From the sequence record NC_061418.1: 64,000 bases of DNA, one strand, 5' to 3'. The notes under the pieces were generated by a model, which worked only from the letters and a program-made list of their open reading frames with translations, was not told the DNA's origin and searched no databases. Positions 4,665-56,237 of the stretch are shown here, piece by piece. The position numbers and the translations under genes were made by a program. Numbering within the stretch: the first letter of the stretch is position 1; each line of letters opens with the position of its first letter.

Positions 4665-4732
4665 TTTGAATTCCTTATTGGTTTAGTTAGCATAGTCCTT
4701 CGGTCAAACGACCGAAGGAAGTGTAAATAGGA

Positions 4733-22400: not shown

Positions 22401-22652
22401 TTAGGCCAGGATTTTTAAAATCTGACGACCGTAGAACGTTTGGGTTAAGACGTTCAATTTAAACTCGGCCTTTTCAGGATAAACAATGAATTGTTCGCAG
22501 ATATTTTTCGTCTCGTCAAAACGAAGACGTTTAAAAATCCGTTCCGCGACCCGTTTCATGATTTTTGCTTTTCCGTTGTGTTCGCGAAAGGCTATGGCTA
22601 ATGTAACGAGAAGATCGATCATCTCGTGATCAATTAAACGTCTATCACTCAT
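22401..22652 (-). CDS. hypothetical protein
   Basis: 83-aa ORF with ATGA overlap. Confidence 0.7.
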   Translation of the reverse strand: MSDRRLIDHEMIDLLVTLAIAFREHNGKAKIMKRVAERIFKRLRFDETKNICEQFIVYPEKAEFKLNVLTQTFYGRQILKILA

Positions 22653-22996
22653 CCCGCGACATCCAGATTAGTGTAAAGTACAGAACAAGTGTCATCTCCG
22701 TCAAAAACAACACCGCTTTCATTCAACCAACGAACGGTTTCTTTTTTCTGCGTGAAAGAGACCGTACTGTAAACTTTATACCCTGGCGTCTGCGCCTCAC
22801 CTTCCATGGCAGAAAGCGAAGAAGGCTTAGCACGCATAAAGGTGACATGAACGGTTTTAGGGTTAACGCCAGGGAACAACGTCACCGCGTTTTTAACCTC
22901 AGTGTTGACGCGATCGATACAAGCGCTATTCGGCGCAGCTTGGGCGGTCGTAGCAGTGAACAGTAGAGCGATGGCCATCAAAGTAATCTTTTTCAT
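22649..22996 (-). CDS. exported protein with Sec signal peptide
   Basis: MKKITLMAIALLFTATTAQA signal peptide; two Cys; GGAG RBS. Confidence 0.75.
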   Translation of the reverse strand: MKKITLMAIALLFTATTAQAAPNSACIDRVNTEVKNAVTLFPGVNPKTVHVTFMRAKPSSLSAMEGEAQTPGYKVYSTVSFTQKKETVRWLNESGVVFDGDDTCSVLYTNLDVAG

Positions 22997-24431: not shown

Positions 24432-24902
24432 TTAGCCGAGATAGAAGCAGTTACCGCCTTTATTTTCGGCGACGATTTTCTTGAGCCCGTTGGTTGAGAA
24501 AACAACGAAGGTCTCCGGATGATCTTGTACGTAAACCTTAACGGTTTTTGCTTTGGTTTTCTTAACGCCTTCGAAGAACAAGCGCCAGTTACTTGCCCCA
24601 ACTGTAGAAGCAGGAGAGATCATCTGGTACTTCTGACCGGCCATTTCGATAACCAGCGCGTAGCGATCATCATCGCTGGAAAGCGAGTTGCCATTAGTAC
24701 CGTTCAGAAACAGCGCTTGAACCGGCCATTGGTCGCCAGTATCGCGGCAAGAGAATGCGAGCGAGAAACCGTCGCTATTTTCGGTGTAGAACTCCAGAGT
24801 ACCCTGCTGATAAGATTCGGTCCAATTATTGACGATGGCCATGGCATTGAAGGATGCGATAGAGGACAGGGCGATGAGTGAAGCAGCAATGAATTTTTTC
24901 AT
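24432..24902 (-). CDS. exported protein with Sec signal peptide
   Basis: MKKFIAASLIALSSIASFNAMA signal peptide; AAGG RBS. Confidence 0.75.
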   Translation of the reverse strand: MKKFIAASLIALSSIASFNAMAIVNNWTESYQQGTLEFYTENSDGFSLAFSCRDTGDQWPVQALFLNGTNGNSLSSDDDRYALVIEMAGQKYQMISPASTVGASNWRLFFEGVKKTKAKTVKVYVQDHPETFVVFSTNGLKKIVAENKGGNCFYLG

Positions 24903-24970: not shown

Positions 24971-25279
24971 CTAGTACCAGTAATTACGGGAATGAAACGA
25001 TTCCCTTGCTACCGCTTCTCTTGTTTTCTGATAAACGAGACCTTCGAAGACAGCGCGCATGATCCAGAAAGCGACATGACTGATCAGGTAGCCGATTTTA
25101 CTTAAGAAACAAGTCCAATCACGGAGTTTTCTTATCGAGCGACCTTTCCAGGAATTATCGTAAAGGACTTCTGGTGTTGCGCACTTTGCAGTTAACTTTT
25201 TGTTAGCGATGTAGGTTAAGAAAGTGATCATCGCCAGGACAGCAAAAGTAACAACAGAAATGAACAGATAGAATTCCAT
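24971..25279 (-). CDS. membrane protein
   Basis: N-terminal TM segment plus a second hydrophobic stretch; GAGGA RBS. Confidence 0.7.
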   Translation of the reverse strand: MEFYLFISVVTFAVLAMITFLTYIANKKLTAKCATPEVLYDNSWKGRSIRKLRDWTCFLSKIGYLISHVAFWIMRAVFEGLVYQKTREAVARESFHSRNYWY

Positions 25280-25299
25280 GGAGTAGTCCTCGGTTTGTC

Positions 25300-25608
25300 T
25301 TAAAGTGGTTGGTAGTCAGCATCATCAAATTTGTCGTGCCACGTGCGACGGTTCTTGCCGGACACGCGATGGCGGTTACGATGACGTTTGTGTTTTTCTT
25401 TTTGTCTTTCCGTTGGTTCACCGTAGAAAAGAACATCGTTAACAGCAGGTTCTTCGTTAACAATTTCTTCGGCGGCACAAACTACTTCGGTCGTTACCTC
25501 TTCGGTAACGACGTCGGCGTCAACCTTACCGCGGTAGAATATGGTAAAAAATGCACTACAGAGTAAACCAATGACAACAAGAATAGCAAAAATGATTAAA
25601 AAAGTCAT
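25300..25608 (-). CDS. single-TM membrane protein with acidic middle and basic tail
   Basis: FLIIFAILVVIGLLCSAFFTIF; AAGGAG RBS. Confidence 0.7.
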   Translation of the reverse strand: MTFLIIFAILVVIGLLCSAFFTIFYRGKVDADVVTEEVTTEVVCAAEEIVNEEPAVNDVLFYGEPTERQKEKHKRHRNRHRVSGKNRRTWHDKFDDADYQPL

Positions 25609-25681
25609 GGTTATATCTCCTTATTTTTAGCGAACAAAGTTTTTAAAGTTTAACTACGAACTCAACGACGACAATTTTTAC

Positions 25682-25954
25682 TTAGCACCAATAGTTATTA
25701 ATTTCCAACTCTACTTCAATTACGTATTTAAAAACCAACGCGGAAACAGGCACGAAGATAAAGAGGATTGCGTAATACGGTACAAACGCGCAGCTCAACA
25801 GAGCAGAGATACCGACCAAGCAAGAGAAGATGTAGCAACCTTTAATGATCTCATTGCGTTTTTCGATATCGAATAACTTATTACGATCAACGGCAACTGC
25901 AATGATAATCGCTATCGCTGCTAATAAGCCCATTACGATAGTAAAGATTAACAT
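25682..25954 (-). CDS. multi-TM membrane protein
   Basis: Three hydrophobic segments in 90 aa. Confidence 0.7.
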   Translation of the reverse strand: MLIFTIVMGLLAAIAIIIAVAVDRNKLFDIEKRNEIIKGCYIFSCLVGISALLSCAFVPYYAILFIFVPVSALVFKYVIEVELEINNYWC

Positions 25955-25966
25955 AATTTTTTCCTT

Positions 25967-26158
25967 TTACTTTAAGAGTAGACTTAGATGTGAGAGAGTT
26001 GTTTGCGTTATAAGAGTCGCATACGGCGATGTCCAGAACCAGACGGCGAAGCCTGTCATTTGTTCTGCAACTACCGAACCAGTAAGAGGGTTTACTGCTA
26101 TTGTCCCTGAACTCTGATCTTTCCTCGATTTCGGAAGAGTCAGTAGGTACAACGCCAC
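25967..26158 (-). CDS. small hypothetical protein
   Basis: 63 aa, GTG start after GAGG. Confidence 0.5.
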   Translation of the reverse strand: MALYLLTLPKSRKDQSSGTIAVNPLTGSVVAEQMTGFAVWFWTSPYATLITQTTLSHLSLLLK

Positions 26159-26289
26159 AGCCTCGATTACAGGTGTCGGGTGAGTAACGAGAAATATCGT
26201 CTTATAACGGTTTGAGAGTGTGAGAATTTAATTTAGCTTATCGTAAGGCGTTTCCTTCTTATCTCGTGTGCCAAGGGTGAGGTGACGAC

Positions 26290-26577
26290 TTAAGCGGTTA
26301 CCGCTGCGTCAGAGACGTCGGTCTCGCCTGCGTCAGTCGCAGTCTCGCCGTCAGTGGCAGGAGAAATGACGGTTTTGAGGTTGTTGTAGCTATCGTGAAT
26401 ATAGCTGAAGATAACCAAGACCGCAAAAGCGTAGGCCGCCACTTCCATGGCAGTAGCCATGCAGAACGCGGCGAAGATTGCCAGCGCGGCAACGATCAGG
26501 GTGTCGGTGATGAAAGCAAAGATTGCTTTGGTTTTCTCAGTGAAAGAGAAAGAGAAGAACGCTTTGATTTTTTCCAT
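26290..26577 (-). CDS. membrane protein (2 TM) with acidic tail
   Basis: AAGGT RBS; hydrophobic core; C-terminal DGETATDAGETD. Confidence 0.75.
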   Translation of the reverse strand: MEKIKAFFSFSFTEKTKAIFAFITDTLIVAALAIFAAFCMATAMEVAAYAFAVLVIFSYIHDSYNNLKTVISPATDGETATDAGETDVSDAAVTA

Positions 26578-26657
26578 GATAATTTACCTTTTGAATTGAA
26601 TATTTTAACTACGGGTGAGAGTGCACTACTCACGCTGTTGAGAGGCAGCGCTTACTA

Positions 26658-26777
26658 CTATTTGACCGCTTTTAAGTAACTCCCTACGGCGACGGCGAAA
26701 ACACAGGCCGGGAGTAAAGCCAAGTCAAGAATAAGTACCGAGGAAATAATTCCCAGTACCGCGAAAGACGTTTTCAT
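26658..26777 (-). CDS. 39-aa membrane micro-protein
   Basis: Hand-translated MKTSFAVLGIISSVLILDLALLPACVFAVAVGSYLKAVK; GGAGG RBS; TAATG coupling; not in the track. Confidence 0.65.
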   Translation of the reverse strand: MKTSFAVLGIISSVLILDLALLPACVFAVAVGSYLKAVK

Positions 26778-26947
26778 TACAACGCCTCCGGTGAATGGGT
26801 TGCGTTGAAATTGGCTTTGTTAGTTTGCTCTTCTAAAAACGCTCCGGCGGCCCCTGCTATGAAAGCTACCAGAAGTGTTGGGATGATAGTCAGTTCAAAG
26901 AAGGTGCAGATCAGCAGGGTGAGAATTAATGCGATGAAGTAAGTCAT
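26777..26947 (-). CDS. 56-aa membrane micro-protein
   Basis: Hand-translated MTYFIALILTLLICTFFELTIIPTLLVAFIAGAAGAFLEEQ...; AGGAG RBS; not in the track. Confidence 0.7.
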   Translation of the reverse strand: MTYFIALILTLLICTFFELTIIPTLLVAFIAGAAGAFLEEQTNKANFNATHSPEAL

Positions 26948-26962
26948 GATGATTTCTCCTTC

Positions 26963-27121
26963 TTAGGGTAAATAGGTAACGGTGACTAACAGAGCGAACG
27001 GTGAAACGATATACCAGACGAGCACAGAGACGAATCCGTAAAGGATGGCCATCGGTAACGAGACGCCGAAACAAAGCAACGCAATGAGCGTGACAATTAA
27101 TAAAAGTATACTTTCTTTCAT
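26963..27121 (-). CDS. 52-aa membrane micro-protein, first gene after an early promoter
   Basis: Hand-translated MKESILLLIVTLIALLCFGVSLPMAILYGFVSVLVWYIVSPFALLVTVTYLP; GAGG RBS; not in the track. Confidence 0.7.
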   Translation of the reverse strand: MKESILLLIVTLIALLCFGVSLPMAILYGFVSVLVWYIVSPFALLVTVTYLP

Positions 27122-27185
27122 TTTACTTTACCTCTTATTGGTTTAGTTATTTGGAAAAGACTTTTTCCTTTCCTATTTCACCTTA

Positions 27186-27198
27186 GCAATATATACAT
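27186..27198 (-). promoter_or_regulatory. candidate early promoter (T-tract + ATGTATATATTGC)
   Basis: Near-identical to the 6230-6242 element, including the flanking AAATGCAGTTTTTTTGATG. Confidence 0.65.
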
Positions 27199-27262
27199 CA
27201 AAAAAACTGCATTTCGATTTATTGAAGTTTTTATGAAACATCTACCTCGGGGATTGAATACG

Positions 27263-27802
27263 ATGAAGAAAATTACGCTTTGGGGACATCCTGTTCCGTT
27301 ATTGGGCTTCTTACACTGGTTGAGTTTTTTATTGATCTACTTCGCAGCGTTGATCATTTGCGTCATTATCACACCGTTTTTACCGGCGTTTGCGACGAAA
27401 GACGGGAAACTACCGAAATGGCTGAAATGGTTCGACACACCGGACAATAGTTTAGACGGGGATTCCGGTTGGAAAGAGAAACACTCTCTCTGGGTAAAGG
27501 TACTCCCTGATTGGGCGCAAACTTACGTCGCCCGTGTCTTTTGGCTATACCGCAACCCGTTGTACGGTTTTTCTATTAGCGTGTTAGGTGCACCAAAAGA
27601 CAAATTCCGTCAACCTGTTTTAGAGGGTAAAGGGTTTGATGTTAAAGGCACCTATAAGTCCCATTACTGGATGGTCTACTTCATGCGTGACGATCACGTG
27701 AAGAAGCGCCGGTTTAAGGTTTACATTGGGTGGAAACTGAAAGCAGAAGGATTTGAGAAATACCAGTTTGCATTTCTGATCAACCCGTTCCAAACGCCGT
27801 AA
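27263..27802 (+). CDS. conserved phage hypothetical protein with N-terminal TM segment
   Basis: Likely start ATG 27263 after GGGGA; WLKWFDTPDNSLDGD and WLYRNPLYGF motifs; TATG just upstream. Confidence 0.7.
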   Translation: MKKITLWGHPVPLLGFLHWLSFLLIYFAALIICVIITPFLPAFATKDGKLPKWLKWFDTPDNSLDGDSGWKEKHSLWVKVLPDWAQTYVARVFWLYRNPLYGFSISVLGAPKDKFRQPVLEGKGFDVKGTYKSHYWMVYFMRDDHVKKRRFKVYIGWKLKAEGFEKYQFAFLINPFQTP

Positions 27803-27816
27803 AAGAAACAAAAAAA

Positions 27817-27840
27817 AAGAGAGGGCAAACGCCCTCTCTT
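27817..27840. terminator. bidirectional intrinsic terminator
   Basis: AAGAGAGGGC-AAAC-GCCCTCTCTT with A and T tracts between convergent genes. Confidence 0.85.
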
Positions 27841-27842
27841 TT

Positions 27843-28262
27843 TTATACGTGTTTTAGCGATTCAATTTCGATTATCGCTTCAATCTCGAAAAACATTCGG
27901 ACAAAGAAAGTAGCGATAGACAGAATACCTAATAAGTACTCATGGTGAACGCAGAGCAGAATGAATAGCACCACAGCCACGATTAAACGCAGCATAACGT
28001 TCATCCCGCCAGTGAAAGTCAGATGCTTCTCTATTTTTTGGCGAAGTTTACTTTTGTTCTCTGGCGTCAGCGATATTCTTGAGAGGTCAGGGAAGGAGAA
28101 GAACTGGAAACCCAGCCAGAGTAAGCGTATTGTGATCAACGTGATCACCCAGTAAATTACTGCATCCTCTAATAACGGGATTTTCGCAATAATAAGAATA
28201 GCCAGGGCGAAGCAGGAGAACAAAGAGAGTATTTTGGAAAGTAGGGTCAGCGAGTAAAACAT
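27843..28262 (-). CDS. multi-TM membrane protein
   Basis: Four hydrophobic segments; AAGGA RBS. Confidence 0.75.
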   Translation of the reverse strand: MFYSLTLLSKILSLFSCFALAILIIAKIPLLEDAVIYWVITLITIRLLWLGFQFFSFPDLSRISLTPENKSKLRQKIEKHLTFTGGMNVMLRLIVAVVLFILLCVHHEYLLGILSIATFFVRMFFEIEAIIEIESLKHV

Positions 28263-28295
28263 TTTATATCTTCCTTAACGTTAACGTTTTAGAAC

Positions 28296-28320
28296 GTCTC
28301 CGGTTCTCTGAACCGGAGAC
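28296..28320 (-). terminator. terminator-like hairpin closing the exported-protein operon
   Basis: GTCTCCGGTT-CTCTG-AACCGGAGAC. Confidence 0.7.
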
Positions 28321-28329
28321 AGAGGTAGA

Positions 28330-28824
28330 TTAGTTTTCGCAGGTCAGGACAACTTTGCCCTGGATGTGAGTAGTGCCCAGCGGCATCTCTTGTGCGTCGA
28401 GATTGATTTTCGGCGCGATAGCCAGCGTTTTGTTGTTACCCTGGATCTGCTGATTTTGAGCAGCGGCGGACCACGCGTATTCCTGGTTGTTGATGAATAC
28501 GGAAGTTTGCGAACGATCGCTGATGGTCATGAGGTTATCAGCGAAGGCGAAGCGCCCGGTGTTTTGGGTCAGTTTGGCTTCGGTCAGTTTCCAGCTCTGG
28601 CGAGCGGTGTTACTTTTCAGTACGAAGTTAACCGCCTTTTGATTATCGGTACCTTGCTCGCCTTTCAGAAGGATCCCGCCGGTCTGCTGACCATTGGCAA
28701 AATCGATCCCACATGACATTTGAGTTTGGGTGTATTCTGCATCCCATACCATTTCCTGCGCAGCGAACGCAGTAGAAGACAGAGACAGTACCAGAGCAGC
28801 CACAGCGAATTTTACGTTTTTCAT
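28330..28824 (-). CDS. exported beta-sandwich-like protein (pilin/fimbrial-subunit-like architecture)
   Basis: Signal peptide ending AFA; Cys near the N-terminus (MSCGI) and the C-terminus (VVLTCEN). Confidence 0.55.
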   Translation of the reverse strand: MKNVKFAVAALVLSLSSTAFAAQEMVWDAEYTQTQMSCGIDFANGQQTGGILLKGEQGTDNQKAVNFVLKSNTARQSWKLTEAKLTQNTGRFAFADNLMTISDRSQTSVFINNQEYAWSAAAQNQQIQGNNKTLAIAPKINLDAQEMPLGTTHIQGKVVLTCEN

Positions 28825-28867
28825 TTGTTTTCCAAAAGAGAGATTGAGTTAAGGTTTTTACTACAAT

Positions 28868-29272
28868 TTACGGATCGACACGCATCGCACGTTGAGAATC
28901 CATTTGCTGATTCTGTTCCATGCGTTCCATTTCCATCTCTAAACGACGGATCTGTAATTCTTTTTGGCGACGACTAAGGTCGGCTAACCGTTCGCAACTT
29001 TCGGCCATCTTATCGTCACCGCCTAAGGGTATACTTATACTAACATACCCACCTTTATCGTTATCTGCATAACGATACTGACTACCATTATTTCCGTACG
29101 CCCCGACGTTAATCGTTGCTTGCGGACGGCTGACCTCACAACTGATATCACCGTTCTGTACGCGGCCACGGTTTTCAGCTGTGTTGTTCATGATGTAAGG
29201 GGCATCGGCAAAAGCCATTGTTGAACAAGTCAGTGTAATTGTAAAAAGTAAGACTTTATTCAACATGGACAT
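28868..29272 (-). CDS. exported protein with C-terminal coiled coil
   Basis: Signal peptide ending AFA; two Cys; GGYVSISIPLGG; RRQKELQIRRLEMEMERMEQ. Confidence 0.7.
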   Translation of the reverse strand: MSMLNKVLLFTITLTCSTMAFADAPYIMNNTAENRGRVQNGDISCEVSRPQATINVGAYGNNGSQYRYADNDKGGYVSISIPLGGDDKMAESCERLADLSRRQKELQIRRLEMEMERMEQNQQMDSQRAMRVDP

Positions 29273-29627
29273 TGAAGCACACCTCAGGTTGGAACTGCGC
29301 GTTGGGTATTACCTGCATCGCGCAGATAGGGACGTATTTCTGTCCGTTATCGTGCTGCTGGATAAATTTGTTATTGATGGTCATCGGAAAGGTCGCTCTT
29401 TCACCACCGAAAACATATTTTTTGTAAGGAATCCCTTTCTTATCTGCAATGACCTTATTCCCGACACGAAACACAAAATCCCCGGATTCTTTCGTGTCGA
29501 TGTACATCTCAATTTGAGAATAACCGTCCATGCCAATAGAGTTAGTTTGGTTAACTGGACCGAAGTAGTGAGCAGAGGCATTCGCCGCAAAGAAGACAAT
29601 CCCTATTAAAGCAAAGCGTAGTTTCAT
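29256..29627 (-). CDS. exported protein
   Basis: Signal peptide ending ASA; C-terminal Cys pair (ICAMQ...PEVC). Confidence 0.7.
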   Translation of the reverse strand: MKLRFALIGIVFFAANASAHYFGPVNQTNSIGMDGYSQIEMYIDTKESGDFVFRVGNKVIADKKGIPYKKYVFGGERATFPMTINNKFIQQHDNGQKYVPICAMQVIPNAQFQPEVCFNVHVE

Positions 29628-29638
29628 TTTAGTTTCTC

Positions 29639-30049
29639 TTATTTCCGGCGACGTTGATGGTTGTTGTTGAATTTGTTGGCGAGATTATTAAATGATTCCT
29701 TTGAAATTTTATTTTCTTTCAAAGAGCTGATCTCGACGACATTGCGTTTATCGTTGCAAGGCCATAAAGACTCAATCAATTCTGCGGTGTCGTCTTTTTC
29801 AAGACCACGATAAATCTCTTCTAGTATATAGTAGTCGCAGAAGGCCGCTGCATCTAAAATGAGATTTGACATTTTAGCCCCTTTGAAAGGATACAGCTGA
29901 CTAGCAACTAATTCGCCGTCTAAAATGTAAAGCGCCACCGAAATTTTTGGTGTGGTATAAATAGCTTTGACTTTAATCTCTTTAACGGTATAAGAACTTT
30001 TATTAATAGCTTTTTGTACGTTTTCGATAGTTTTCGCAGTCAGTAACAT
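29639..30049 (-). CDS. hypothetical protein, first gene after an early promoter
   Basis: GGAG RBS before ATG 30049; AT-rich. Confidence 0.7.
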   Translation of the reverse strand: MLLTAKTIENVQKAINKSSYTVKEIKVKAIYTTPKISVALYILDGELVASQLYPFKGAKMSNLILDAAAFCDYYILEEIYRGLEKDDTAELIESLWPCNDKRNVVEISSLKENKISKESFNNLANKFNNNHQRRRK

Positions 30050-30113
30050 TAATAGCACTCCAATAGGTTTAGTTATTTTATTTACGGAAAGGTTTTATCT
30101 TTCCTAAATCACT

Positions 30114-30128
30114 GTAGCTATATAGATG
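30114..30128 (-). promoter_or_regulatory. candidate early promoter variant (CATCTATATAGC)
   Basis: Same position and leader architecture as the 6230, 27186 and 49005 elements. Confidence 0.55.
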
Positions 30129-30135
30129 TTAAAAA

Positions 30136-30161
30136 AATTGGAGATGGGTTCATCTCCAATT
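30136..30161 (-). terminator. intrinsic terminator
   Basis: AATTGGAGATG-GGTT-CATCTCCAATT with a minus-strand T tract. Confidence 0.8.
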
Positions 30162-46684: not shown

Positions 46685-47023
46685 TTATCTTACCGTTTTA
46701 ATTTGGGTATACGGGACTTCCATTGTAGAAACGTATTTACCCATACGGTTGTAGAATAACCCTAATACCGCCACCTGCTCGTTGTCATGGTTTTCTAAGA
46801 CCAACTGGTAGTCATCGCTGTTACAACTCCATTTATATTGACTACCTTGCTGGCCCATATACTGGCAGCCTATATTAGTCCCGCCAAAAACACCGAAAGC
46901 CTTGTCGCCAGATACCGTTACACGATTATGACCGCTACGAAAAGTTTCAGTCACCGCCTGTGCAGAGAAGGTAGTGAAAACGGCTAAGAGAACTGCCGAA
47001 CAAATGAGAAAAATCTTTTTCAT
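46685..47023 (-). CDS. exported protein with Sec signal peptide
   Basis: MKKIFLICSAVLLAVFTTFSAQA; two Cys in the mature part. Confidence 0.75.
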   Translation of the reverse strand: MKKIFLICSAVLLAVFTTFSAQAVTETFRSGHNRVTVSGDKAFGVFGGTNIGCQYMGQQGSQYKWSCNSDDYQLVLENHDNEQVAVLGLFYNRMGKYVSTMEVPYTQIKTVR

Positions 47024-47035
47024 GTTGAGCACCTT

Positions 47036-47392
47036 TTAAGAACTGGAGAGAGAACGGAATTGGTTTTTGTTTACCAGCTTTTCAATGACCACCTTTTCAC
47101 GTTTACCGTCGTAAATACGTAAAAGGAATAAATTGGTTTTGTTATAGCTTTTCAGTGCGAAGTAAAAACGATCCCCGCAAACGTAAGTGTCGGCGGAGTA
47201 AACAAAGCCATCGTTATCGACCTGGTCGTTGACAATTTCTGGATCGGTGCAGATGTACTTCTTGCCGTTCGCAAAGATGACCGCGCGGTTATCGGTGATC
47301 GTCCATTTAGAGTTTTGATCCTCGAACATAATCGCTGTTGCATTAGCGAAGAAAGGGAAAACCAACGTTAAAATAAGAATGATCTTTTTCAT
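47036..47392 (-). CDS. exported protein with Sec signal peptide
   Basis: MKKIILILTLVFPFFANA; two Cys in the mature part. Confidence 0.75.
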   Translation of the reverse strand: MKKIILILTLVFPFFANATAIMFEDQNSKWTITDNRAVIFANGKKYICTDPEIVNDQVDNDGFVYSADTYVCGDRFYFALKSYNKTNLFLLRIYDGKREKVVIEKLVNKNQFRSLSSS

Positions 47393-53911: not shown

Positions 53912-54211
53912 TTATTTGCGATACGCTTTCGTGCCGTTGTCTGTCTGCTGAGTGTACTTGTTCTCAGAAGGGCAATACGGATCACGGGCGGCATAACTTC
54001 CCCCTAAGACAGGCGCAATGCTTCTCCCTTCTACGTAGAAGTACTCGCAACCAGTCGCGTGATCGATGATAATCCGTAAATAACCATCATCCATAGACTT
54101 CTTCTCGAAGCGCCCCGCATAGTTATTATCGGGGTCATCCCACACCGTAATAGTGTCAGCTAACGCCCCGTGCGAGAACAACAGTATCAGAACAAGAAAA
54201 AGTTTATTCAC
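53912..54211 (-). CDS. exported protein, DUF6440-like
   Basis: Signal peptide ending ALA; IIIDHATGCEYFY...IAPVL motif. Confidence 0.6.
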   Translation of the reverse strand: MNKLFLVLILLFSHGALADTITVWDDPDNNYAGRFEKKSMDDGYLRIIIDHATGCEYFYVEGRSIAPVLGGSYAARDPYCPSENKYTQQTDNGTKAYRK

Positions 54212-54667: not shown

Positions 54668-55231
54668 TTAATTAAAACGGTTAGTCATGGCCAGCGGATT
54701 GACTTTAAAATGCTTATCGGTTTCTATCTGACGAGCTAATCGCGTAACTTCATCAGCGGCGATAATGTTATATTCATTTCCAATTGCCAGAATTACGCAT
54801 GGTTTCTCTACTTGGACAGAGAAACCCAAGGCATTATGTCGATTGATCACCTCGTAAGTCTTCTTCAATCGGCTTTCTTCTCCCTGTTCGATATTTAACC
54901 CAACCTCTTTCAGACCGTTGATAAAGTCTTGCAGATCTTGAAGAGTGTAAACAGGGAAAAGATGACCATTACCTGGTACAGCTTTTGTCCGTTGAAAGAA
55001 ACGAGTAACTGACGGGAGAAGTTTAAAACGAGGGACCGGGAATTCTCCAGATGTAACGGTTTCATTGAATTCCTTTTCCGATCGATGGTAAATCGTACCG
55101 TCTCCGTTCAACGGGTAGTAACTAACAGAAGTCTCCCCATCAGTGTCATTATTAGCAGAAGTCGCTAAACCGGATACAATGTAAATTTCGCCTTTATAAT
55201 GCCTATATACCTGCCCGATAGAAATGGTCAT
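54668..55231 (-). CDS. DUF1653-domain (SH3-like) protein with C-terminal extension
   Basis: GQVYRHYKGEIYIV...VSYYPL...IYHRSEKEF. Confidence 0.75.
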   Translation of the reverse strand: MTISIGQVYRHYKGEIYIVSGLATSANNDTDGETSVSYYPLNGDGTIYHRSEKEFNETVTSGEFPVPRFKLLPSVTRFFQRTKAVPGNGHLFPVYTLQDLQDFINGLKEVGLNIEQGEESRLKKTYEVINRHNALGFSVQVEKPCVILAIGNEYNIIAADEVTRLARQIETDKHFKVNPLAMTNRFN

Positions 55232-55590
55232 TTCCCCGCCTTAAATTCATTAATTTCGATCCCGTAAACTTCGCAACTGATTTCGTTGTATGCTACGGCC
55301 GCGTTGACAGTGAAGCTATTGCTATTCCTGTCCATTGCCAATAATCCCAGTGGCAACACTTTAACGTGTTCTTTCACCCTGACACCACCTTGGTAATAGG
55401 CCCCTACCGGTTCGAGAGGACCCGTTACCTCTACCCATTTGTGGTAGGCAAGGTTTTCCACAGAACCCCCATTAAGAAGTTTCTCTGAGAAATATTCACC
55501 CATCACAGATTTGAGATGGCCACGGCAATCGACAGCGACCGCATTAAGAGAAACACCCGCCAGTAAAACTGCTAAAATCATCTTTTTCAT
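55228..55590 (-). CDS. exported protein with Sec signal peptide
   Basis: MKKMILAVLLAGVSLNAVA; two Cys; start ATG 55590. Confidence 0.75.
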   Translation of the reverse strand: MKKMILAVLLAGVSLNAVAVDCRGHLKSVMGEYFSEKLLNGGSVENLAYHKWVEVTGPLEPVGAYYQGGVRVKEHVKVLPLGLLAMDRNSNSFTVNAAVAYNEISCEVYGIEINEFKAGK

Positions 55591-55595
55591 ATTTG

Positions 55596-56237
55596 TTACT
55601 CCCAAAACTCCCAATTAATTCCTTTACGAATTTCTTCGATGGTTTCTTTATAAGTTTCACCTAATGGTCTACGAGAAGAATTGAAGGAAAAAGACCCTTC
55701 TTCGTTAAAATGATATCGTCGGTCTTCGTCTGTATCAAAATAAAGAACAACTCCGTCTTTAACGAAACGACGTTCTTCAAGACCTTCACGCGGGTAAAGA
55801 AATTCACGCCAGCTCGGTTCACGAACGTAACCTTTCCGAGCTGCTAAATGATCAAGTGAAATTTCAGTAATTCTCCATTGTATTTCTGGTCGAGGGTCAC
55901 TGTACCCCAAATCGACGAAGAACTGAATGAAGTCGGATACGGCGATATTTGGAACTATACCTTTGAATCTCGCCGATTGGAAGAGGATAATTCCATCTTT
56001 GATCTCTACCGTCAGATCACTCGGTGAAAATATTTGAGTGTTATTTTCGATTTTTAAGTGCGCGAAAATACGAAACGCAAATGAACCTGTTACATTTTCT
56101 TCGTTGATAGATAAGAATTCTAACAGTTTAGAAATGTACTTCCCTTTCGTTAAACGATTGAATTCGAATGCCAAAGAAAGATTTCCTTCAACCAATTCAA
56201 AGCGCACTTCTTCCCATTTTAAATTAAACTTACCCAT
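55596..56237 (-). CDS. hypothetical protein
   Basis: 213 aa. Confidence 0.75.
   Translation of the reverse strand: MGKFNLKWEEVRFELVEGNLSLAFEFNRLTKGKYISKLLEFLSINEENVTGSFAFRIFAHLKIENNTQIFSPSDLTVEIKDGIILFQSARFKGIVPNIAVSDFIQFFVDLGYSDPRPEIQWRITEISLDHLAARKGYVREPSWREFLYPREGLEERRFVKDGVVLYFDTDEDRRYHFNEEGSFSFNSSRRPLGETYKETIEEIRKGINWEFWE

Follow-up and report, generated by a model that had tools for sequence, protein, structure and literature searches.

Superinfection exclusion by exported or membrane-located phage proteins is known from Sp and Imm of phage T4, Sim of phage P1 and Llp of phage T5. These proteins are small, directed to the envelope, often early, accessory and mobile, and in these respects they appear to resemble a set of three genes that we describe here from the Klebsiella jumbo phage KpLz-2_45 (Siatvirus, 296.7 kb). 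Unlike the trio, which is an obligate three-gene set with Ig-like and hairpin-helix parts, they are single proteins with other folds, and comparisons with Pfam, PHROG, NCBIfam and PADLOC revealed no homology between the trio and exclusion proteins. The window analysed, a stretch of 64,000 nucleotides (nt) from sequence record NC_061418.1, corresponds to the last 64 kb of the phage genome (100% identity), and the KpLz-2_45 locus is 98% identical to that of G001, a complete 302-kb phage genome. On the minus strand, window positions 29627..28330 hold three tightly packed, co-oriented open reading frames (ORFs), which were named P1, P2 and P3:

29256..29627, minus strand: P1 (KpLz245_3020), 123 amino acids (aa), annotated 'hypothetical protein'
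28868..29272, minus strand: P2 (KpLz245_3010), 134 aa, annotated 'hypothetical protein'
28330..28824, minus strand: P3 (KpLz245_3000), 164 aa, annotated 'hypothetical protein'

The ORFs of P1 and P2 overlap by 17 nt in the window, and an overlap of these two genes is present in most lineages, which we read as translational coupling. No relatedness among the three proteins was detectable, the alignment of P1 with P3 covering signal peptides only, and none of the three has a paralogue within the phage genome.

P1, P2 and P3 very probably constitute a co-functional exported module. A tblastn survey of 50,697 phage records detected P2 and P3 in an identical set of 24; when the most distant homologues served as queries, these records and no others came back. 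P1 was detected by tblastn in 21 of the 24, and in the remaining Erwinia phage lineage it is present in the expected place, where blastp identified it (E 1e-7). Five lineages, with genomes of 147-307 kb, are represented among the records: Siatvirus, the FBKp24/Centimanus group, Miamivirus, Eowynvirus and the rV5-like Erwinia phage pEp_SNUABM_01 (147 kb). On the metagenomic contigs of sufficient length to include neighbours (L003/L004, L006, L007, L018, L019 and L022), the order of the three genes is the same, and on L020 and L021 the end of P2 adjoins P3. L022 is a 375-kb contig from a fermentation metagenome (ENA UOOR01000004) and presumably a very large phage genome.

In an all-against-all comparison of flanking regions, P1, P2 and P3 were all that the window and the distant loci have in common, and the genes next to the trio recurred only in the close relative FBKp24. 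Since no other genes are common to the distant phages, P1, P2 and P3 make up one horizontally mobile cassette. The exact three-gene block has moved between jumbo phages, the 375-kb giant-phage contig and an rV5-like phage and was kept intact each time, which points to a self-contained, selectable function. A model reading of this stretch (the original prediction) had proposed that the three genes form a functional unit. This proposal came through the check for co-occurrence of the homologues, given that they reside in the same phage records, in a fixed order, and are the sole genes common to otherwise unrelated loci.

The divergence of the three genes is in keeping with such a unit. Relative to G001, the ratio of non-synonymous to synonymous substitution rates (dN/dS) is 0.03 for P1 and 0.08 for P2; relative to FBKp24, where synonymous sites are saturated, the proportion of non-synonymous differences (pN) is 0.25 for P1, 0.11 for P2 and 0.17 for P3. 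The trio is under purifying selection, with P1 being its fastest-evolving and P2 its most conserved member. Distance matrices of the three proteins are congruent (r = 0.87 for P2 with P3, and 0.56 for P1 with either).

Several observations concern the settings in which the cassette or parts of it occur. In pEp_SNUABM_01 (L016, 4281-5504) the trio is located inside an array of tRNA genes, between those for tRNA-Arg and tRNA-Cys, and on the 375-kb contig its neighbours are a HIT-family gene on one side and a gene for a PIF1-type helicase on the other. A very distant P3-like gene, P0043, was found alone on a 2.6-kb contig (L017); about 1 kb 5' of it (575-1588), where P1 and P2 would be expected, no convincing ORF is present. 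Pattern scans of 185,579 genomes with P2 and P3, which detect close relatives only, yielded no bacterial or archaeal relatives. There are hints of P1 and P2 copies in bacteria, from one Atlas row and from a note attached to the Miami record.

All three products carry the marks of exported proteins. Signal peptides were called by a crude rule-based procedure (n-, h- and c-regions plus an AXA site), according to which all 28 full-length homologues from 11 loci have a signal peptide that can be cleaved off, lack any other membrane segment and contain exactly two cysteines in the mature part. In P1, P2 and P3 alike, the n-region carries positive charge and is followed by a hydrophobic core and an AXA-type site. 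Their cysteine pairs (C102/C117 in P1, C45/C93 in P2, C38/C162 in P3) all occupy invariant alignment columns. Judged from these features, there are strong grounds to regard P1, P2 and P3 as Sec-exported, and each is probably oxidised to one disulfide in the periplasm. The crude rule agrees, in every homologue, with the earlier description of three consecutive ORFs with Sec signal peptides whose products look exported and disulfide-bonded. The accompanying statement that each mature part has exactly one cysteine pair holds for all three, with the correction that P2 contains a third, non-conserved cysteine inside its signal peptide.

About nine of the 96 ORFs in the window combine a signal peptide with exactly two mature cysteines, and therefore the mere adjacency of three such genes is only mildly improbable. 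The strong evidence for a unit is the conserved synteny in other phages rather than adjacency. By the same count, the remark that a set of this kind is unexpected in a lytic phage was overstated; examples of early proteins that are exported are known from T4, T5 and phage P1.

Among described proteins, those that P3 resembles most closely in structure are the pilins of chaperone-usher systems (FimA, FimI, the pilin domain of PapG, CfaB, CS17, CsuA/B), on which its core superposes better than on other Ig-like folds (about 105-108 residues at 3.3-3.8 Å, Z 5.6-6.1). Following the signal peptide (residues 1-21), P3 has a conserved amphipathic N-terminal extension (residues 22-37, motif EQVW.A) that precedes the core, which was modelled as a seven-strand immunoglobulin (Ig)-like beta sandwich (predicted local distance difference test (pLDDT) 83.7). 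Foldseek ranked CFA/I CfaB first (E 4e-3, probability 0.99, template modelling (TM) score ~0.4); further class-5 and type-1 pilins came next, along with strand-exchange fibres such as CanA and TasA. VIA, an independent aligner, placed FimA, FimI, CfaE/CfaB, CS17 and the pilin domains of FimH and PapG on top (Z 5.4-6.1 over ~105 residues at 3-4 Å), about 1.3 Z units above other, generic Ig-like domains. The aligned core starts at residues 35-37 and extends to ~163. Features of P3 that recall pilins are Sec export, a cysteine just after the N-terminal extension and a terminal alternating strand. The claim that the last protein of the set is pilin-like fits its model, for which chaperone-usher pilin domains are the top matches of two aligners. 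The similarity between the models is nevertheless weak, a consistent hint whose Z of 6.1 lies below the level at which the aligner itself calls a match specific or homologous.

Other properties set P3 apart from pilins. Its disulfide would join the first strand to the last, whereas that of pilins joins strands A and B. Since the C38-C162 pair would tie the two ends of the sandwich together, a closed Ig fold seems to be favoured over an open pilin groove, and together with the model the pair suggests that P3 is a complete Ig fold. Sequence similarity to pilins is lacking: P3 and 16 homologues did not match the Pfam families Fimbrial, Fimbrial_CS1 or SCPU at E <= 1. A P3 profile search of 1.84 billion proteins returned nine clusters at 50% identity, which apparently are members of the P3 family themselves, and the same type of search against PDB sequences returned nothing. 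Viral predicted structures contributed two phage proteins only. The signal peptide of P3 (28762-28824) resembles that of the enterobacterial DUF1471 proteins BhsA and YbiJ (NCBIfam, E 8e-4 and 0.03; residues 1-41 and 1-48). We rejected these matches as an indication of the family of P3 because they are limited to the signal peptide, which itself may be a host-adapted export signal.

P2 consists of a signal peptide (residues 1-22, cleavage AFA|DA), a highly conserved mature N-terminus (DAPYI.NN), an amphipathic beta hairpin (52-60 and 74-85) around a variable loop that is rich in insertions and deletions, and a helix (94-131). Nowhere in the cassette is conservation higher than in the mature N-terminus and in the hairpin, which ends in ...ISIPLGG. 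The original prediction had given the middle protein a hairpin and a coiled coil; the AlphaFold2 (AF2) model agrees in showing beta strands (four short ones) and a long helix (94-131), albeit with low confidence (pLDDT 68). The model is too uncertain, and its fold search returned generic long helices only. PHROG 1755 and 37374, to which P2 has weak matches, are both without assigned function. Six of 11 P2 homologues (L007, L014, L015, L016, L018 and L019) have a C-terminal lysine after the long helix, which recalls the peptidoglycan-linked C-terminal lysine of Braun's lipoprotein. This residue is not conserved, and P2 of KpLz-2_45 ends in ...VDP.

P1, described earlier as a compact beta protein, is Ig-like in the Atlas model (predicted TM score (pTM) 0.76), which shows a small sandwich whose nearest folds are FlgD_ig, Fn3-like domains and domain 2 of GbpA (TM 0.55-0.60). 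It is a single Ig-like domain of ~100 residues and has no PapD_N match. A PDB sequence match links it to entry 3msw, an uncharacterised protein (E 0.006). Cleavage of the signal peptide (residues 1-19) before H20 would leave an N-terminal histidine on the mature protein; a histidine brace was considered and rejected because this residue is not conserved.

None of the three proteins has a genuine family match in Pfam, NCBIfam or PADLOC (PADLOC at E <= 1), and single-sequence as well as profile searches of PDB sequences gave nothing beyond the match of P1 to 3msw. All three families lack names and are very narrow. A search for usher proteins in G001 (Pfam Usher, PF00577) gave no match at E <= 1, with the E. 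coli control being positive, and no usher was found among the neighbour genes of the cassette. Likewise, the two-domain chaperones of the PapD type (PF00345) have no match in G001, and P1, P2 and P3 match none of the curli Csg families (CsgA/B/E/F/G) in Pfam or NCBIfam. The cassette is therefore not a chaperone-usher fimbria. The analysis does not support the proposal of a fimbria- or curli-like system of a known type: the 98%-identical G001 has neither usher nor PapD-like chaperone, and fimbrial or curli Pfam matches are lacking. The phiKp24 structure paper makes no mention of the trio genes, and our literature search found no paper on a pilin-like exported cassette of phages.

What might such a module do? 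We tentatively suggest, by analogy with the exclusion proteins, that the most likely role is to protect the infected cell at the envelope, either by superinfection exclusion or by masking of a receptor. The trio would be transcribed behind an early-looking, repeated promoter/leader cassette, and its products would pass through Sec, acquire one periplasmic disulfide each and cooperate in the infected cell's envelope, presumably as a complex in the periplasm or at the outer membrane. P3, with its pilin-type Ig-like sandwich and conserved N-terminal extension, would probably be the binding module, and P2, with an amphipathic hairpin and a ~40-residue helix, probably an oligomeric scaffold or outer-membrane anchor, while P1 would act as a small, fast-evolving Ig-like partner. 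Contacts would then be made by the surfaces of the fast-evolving P1 and P3, with P2 as the conserved scaffold or anchor. By occupying or altering a host envelope structure, the cassette would protect the infected cell. The evidence supports exchange of the module among large virulent phages whose hosts are Klebsiella, Raoultella and Erwinia. Taken as a whole, the statement that combines a co-functional exported module with a protective role in the envelope falls slightly short of being probable.

Several points weigh against this proposal. The phage exports several other two-cysteine proteins, and hence export by itself says little about the role of the trio. Searches of Pfam, PHROG, NCBIfam and PADLOC connected the trio with no known protein of exclusion, lysis or the envelope, either by sequence or by family. 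The sequencing runs located were exclusively metagenomes and wastewater 'RNA' libraries kept as contigs. Early timing is read from the sequence of the upstream cassette, the protective function is suggested by likeness to other systems, and physical interaction of P1, P2 and P3 is something that we infer.

Alternatively, the trio may represent a minimal, usher-independent assembly in which P2 oligomerises by means of its amphipathic hairpin, forming a small TolC-like barrel with a periplasmic helical stalk, and P3 and P1 dock on it or polymerise by strand complementation. This is unlikely but merits discussion, as the nearest folds of P3 are donor-strand pilins and the strand-exchange fibres CanA and TasA, and as the start of the aligned core leaves the amphipathic N-terminal extension of P3 outside. 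Similar to TolC-family OEP proteins, P2 has a strand, a variable loop, a second strand ending in S.S.P..GG and a long helix. Three of nine P2 homologues match OEP (PF02321) with 18.6, 15.2 and 14.9 bits (E 0.0017-0.023), each in the same register, with residues 44-117 of P2 aligned to the strand-loop-strand-helix unit at profile positions 33-105. The register recurs when P2 is compared by hhalign with eight OEP repeats of E. coli, residues 52-88 falling on the OEP hairpin (P = 0.07, probability 0.8%). Moreover, the indel-rich loop between the strands, the position of both cysteines, which would face the periplasm, and the low confidence of the monomer model, which suits an obligate oligomer, are compatible with a barrel.

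The evidence on the other side is nonetheless substantial. Similarity to OEP is never significant, the scores staying below the gathering cut-off of 22 bits and pairwise scores with TolC not rising above those of shuffled sequences (z at most 2.4), and P2 of KpLz-2_45 has no OEP match in Pfam. Weak matches also occur in Gram-positive bacteria and archaea, which have no outer membrane, and are thus unspecific. The strands of P2 are short, and P2 has one hairpin and one helix where a TolC-family protomer has four of each. We therefore keep the resemblance to the TolC hairpin-helix unit, a non-significant one, as a lead only. For P3, the disulfide between first and last strand argues for a complete Ig fold, and the pilin Z reaches only ~6. 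A broader version, in which the phage encodes an usher-free envelope structure of a new type with a P2 barrel and attached P3 and P1 that is surface-exposed or spans the periplasm, is rather unlikely.

An explanation that would rely on the same kind of proteins without an assembly is a set of periplasmic inhibitors, comparable to T4 Sp, Ivy or PliC/MliC, against envelope-active enzymes (lysozymes, tail lysins or proteases, for example) that come from the host or from competing phages. Small, exported, disulfide-stapled beta proteins behind an early-looking promoter would fit such a function, and so would the export of several other such proteins by the phage. We consider it improbable, because no inhibitor family or structure was matched and the strict three-gene linkage points to one assembly and not to separate inhibitors.

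It is very unlikely that the cassette interferes with host chaperone-usher fimbriae, with P3 mimicking a pilin or a terminator subunit of the FimI/PapH type that is taken up by a host chaperone and jams or caps ushers, helped by P1 and P2. The known hosts Klebsiella, Raoultella and Erwinia do make chaperone-usher fimbriae, and the top structural matches of P3 include FimI, PapH and pilins bound to a chaperone. Yet P3 has no sequence similarity to any fimbrial family and differs from type 1 pilins in the position of its disulfide. The idea also leaves the constant linkage of three genes unexplained and offers no obvious benefit to the phage.

A function in lysis or its timing, be it a spanin-like disruption of the outer membrane or a periplasmic sensor for lysis inhibition, is highly improbable. 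Two-component spanins consist of an o-spanin, a lipoprotein with a lipobox cysteine, and an i-spanin, whose N-terminal membrane anchor stays uncleaved. The periplasmic, cysteine-containing helix of P2 is loosely reminiscent of an i-spanin, and L003 and L004 carry two cell-wall hydrolase genes ~2-3 kb downstream of the trio. None of the three proteins, however, has a lipobox, which leaves no candidate o-spanin; all have AXA-type cleavage sites, so that the signal peptide of P2 would not serve as a membrane anchor, and no lysis family of PHROG is matched. We thus rejected the cassette as a pair of two-component spanins. Because the flanks are not conserved, the hydrolase genes are lineage-specific neighbours, and the promoter cassette looks early, not late. 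Finally, the view that three unrelated exported proteins are merely side by side, to which the abundance of exported two-cysteine proteins in the window and the presumed nature of any interaction lend some appeal, can hardly be maintained in the face of co-occurrence, fixed order, congruent divergence and the transfer of an exact three-gene block across unrelated phages.

Effects of large lytic phages on the envelope of the infected cell have been studied far less than those in the cytoplasm. If the exported module indeed blocks superinfection or masks a receptor, this would matter for the design of phage cocktails against Klebsiella. If instead it builds a structure, a new assembly principle would be at hand, and infected cells would bear a virus-made assembly on the surface or across the periplasm. 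The module is small enough to be expressed, fractionated and solved.

The surroundings of the trio in KpLz-2_45 comprise the following elements:

30136-30161: bidirectional terminator-like hairpin, from the terminator scan; the promoter-like box at 30114-30126 lies downstream of it
30114..30126, minus strand: promoter-like box TCTATATAGCTAC, belonging to a repeated promoter-plus-leader cassette upstream of the unit
30066..30074, minus strand: leader box AACTAAACC, a short way 5' of the ribosome-binding site that belongs to gene 29639-30049
29639..30049, minus strand: KpLz245_3030, 136 aa, without signal peptide, first gene of the local transcription unit
28295..28321, minus strand: GC-rich 12-bp hairpin without U-run, immediately after the P3 stop codon
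27843..28262, minus strand: gene for a multi-pass membrane protein of 139 aa with hydrophobic segments, downstream of P3
27813..27844, minus strand: canonical intrinsic terminator (14-bp stem plus T-run) at the end of the run of co-oriented genes

Six copies of the leader box AACTAAACC are present in the window (at 4680, 27140, 30066, 48255, 48954 and 57803), compared with 0.78 copies expected by chance. All copies are on the minus strand, each just 5' of a ribosome-binding site. Those at ~27140, 30066 and ~48954 can be aligned as a longer cassette composed of a T-run, TATATA..GC and AGTGA...AGGAAAG. Based on this repetition, the cassette upstream of the trio is a candidate early promoter. It spans 30066-30126 and precedes KpLz245_3030, not P1 directly, which starts 11 nt after the end of this gene; the local unit in this phage therefore starts with four genes. 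KpLz245_3030 has no family match and is outside the conserved cassette, being common to the FBKp24 lineage only.

At the other end, the hairpin behind P3 is very stable, and the region containing it (28270-28335) folds with -24.2 kcal/mol (z -4.3). The hairpin was not listed by the consensus terminator scan; it could be a terminator, an attenuator or an element of RNA stability. Transcription from the trio may read through into the membrane protein gene at 27843..28262, which also is outside the conserved cassette and common to FBKp24 only, and the local transcription unit would thus comprise roughly four or five genes. The frame of promoter and terminator that had been drawn around the three genes earlier was roughly right, except that the promoter precedes an additional, non-exported gene and that the hairpin after P3 is devoid of a U-run.

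The trio belongs to a broader output that jumbo phages direct to the envelope and that has received little study. Six further ORFs of the window that combine a signal peptide with two mature cysteines, all on the minus strand, are located at 22649-22996, 24432-24902, 46685-47032, 47036-47392, 53912-54211 and 55228-55614; by blastp they are unrelated to one another and to the trio, and they match no Pfam family. The phage thus seems to export a sizeable set of disulfide-bonded proteins, and many small membrane proteins are encoded in the window as well. Among the latter is a run of small genes just 3' of the trio (24971-28262) whose products are strongly hydrophobic membrane proteins of 52-139 aa, and on the opposite strand a DUF7338 membrane protein is encoded at 27233-27802 (Pfam, E 2e-43).

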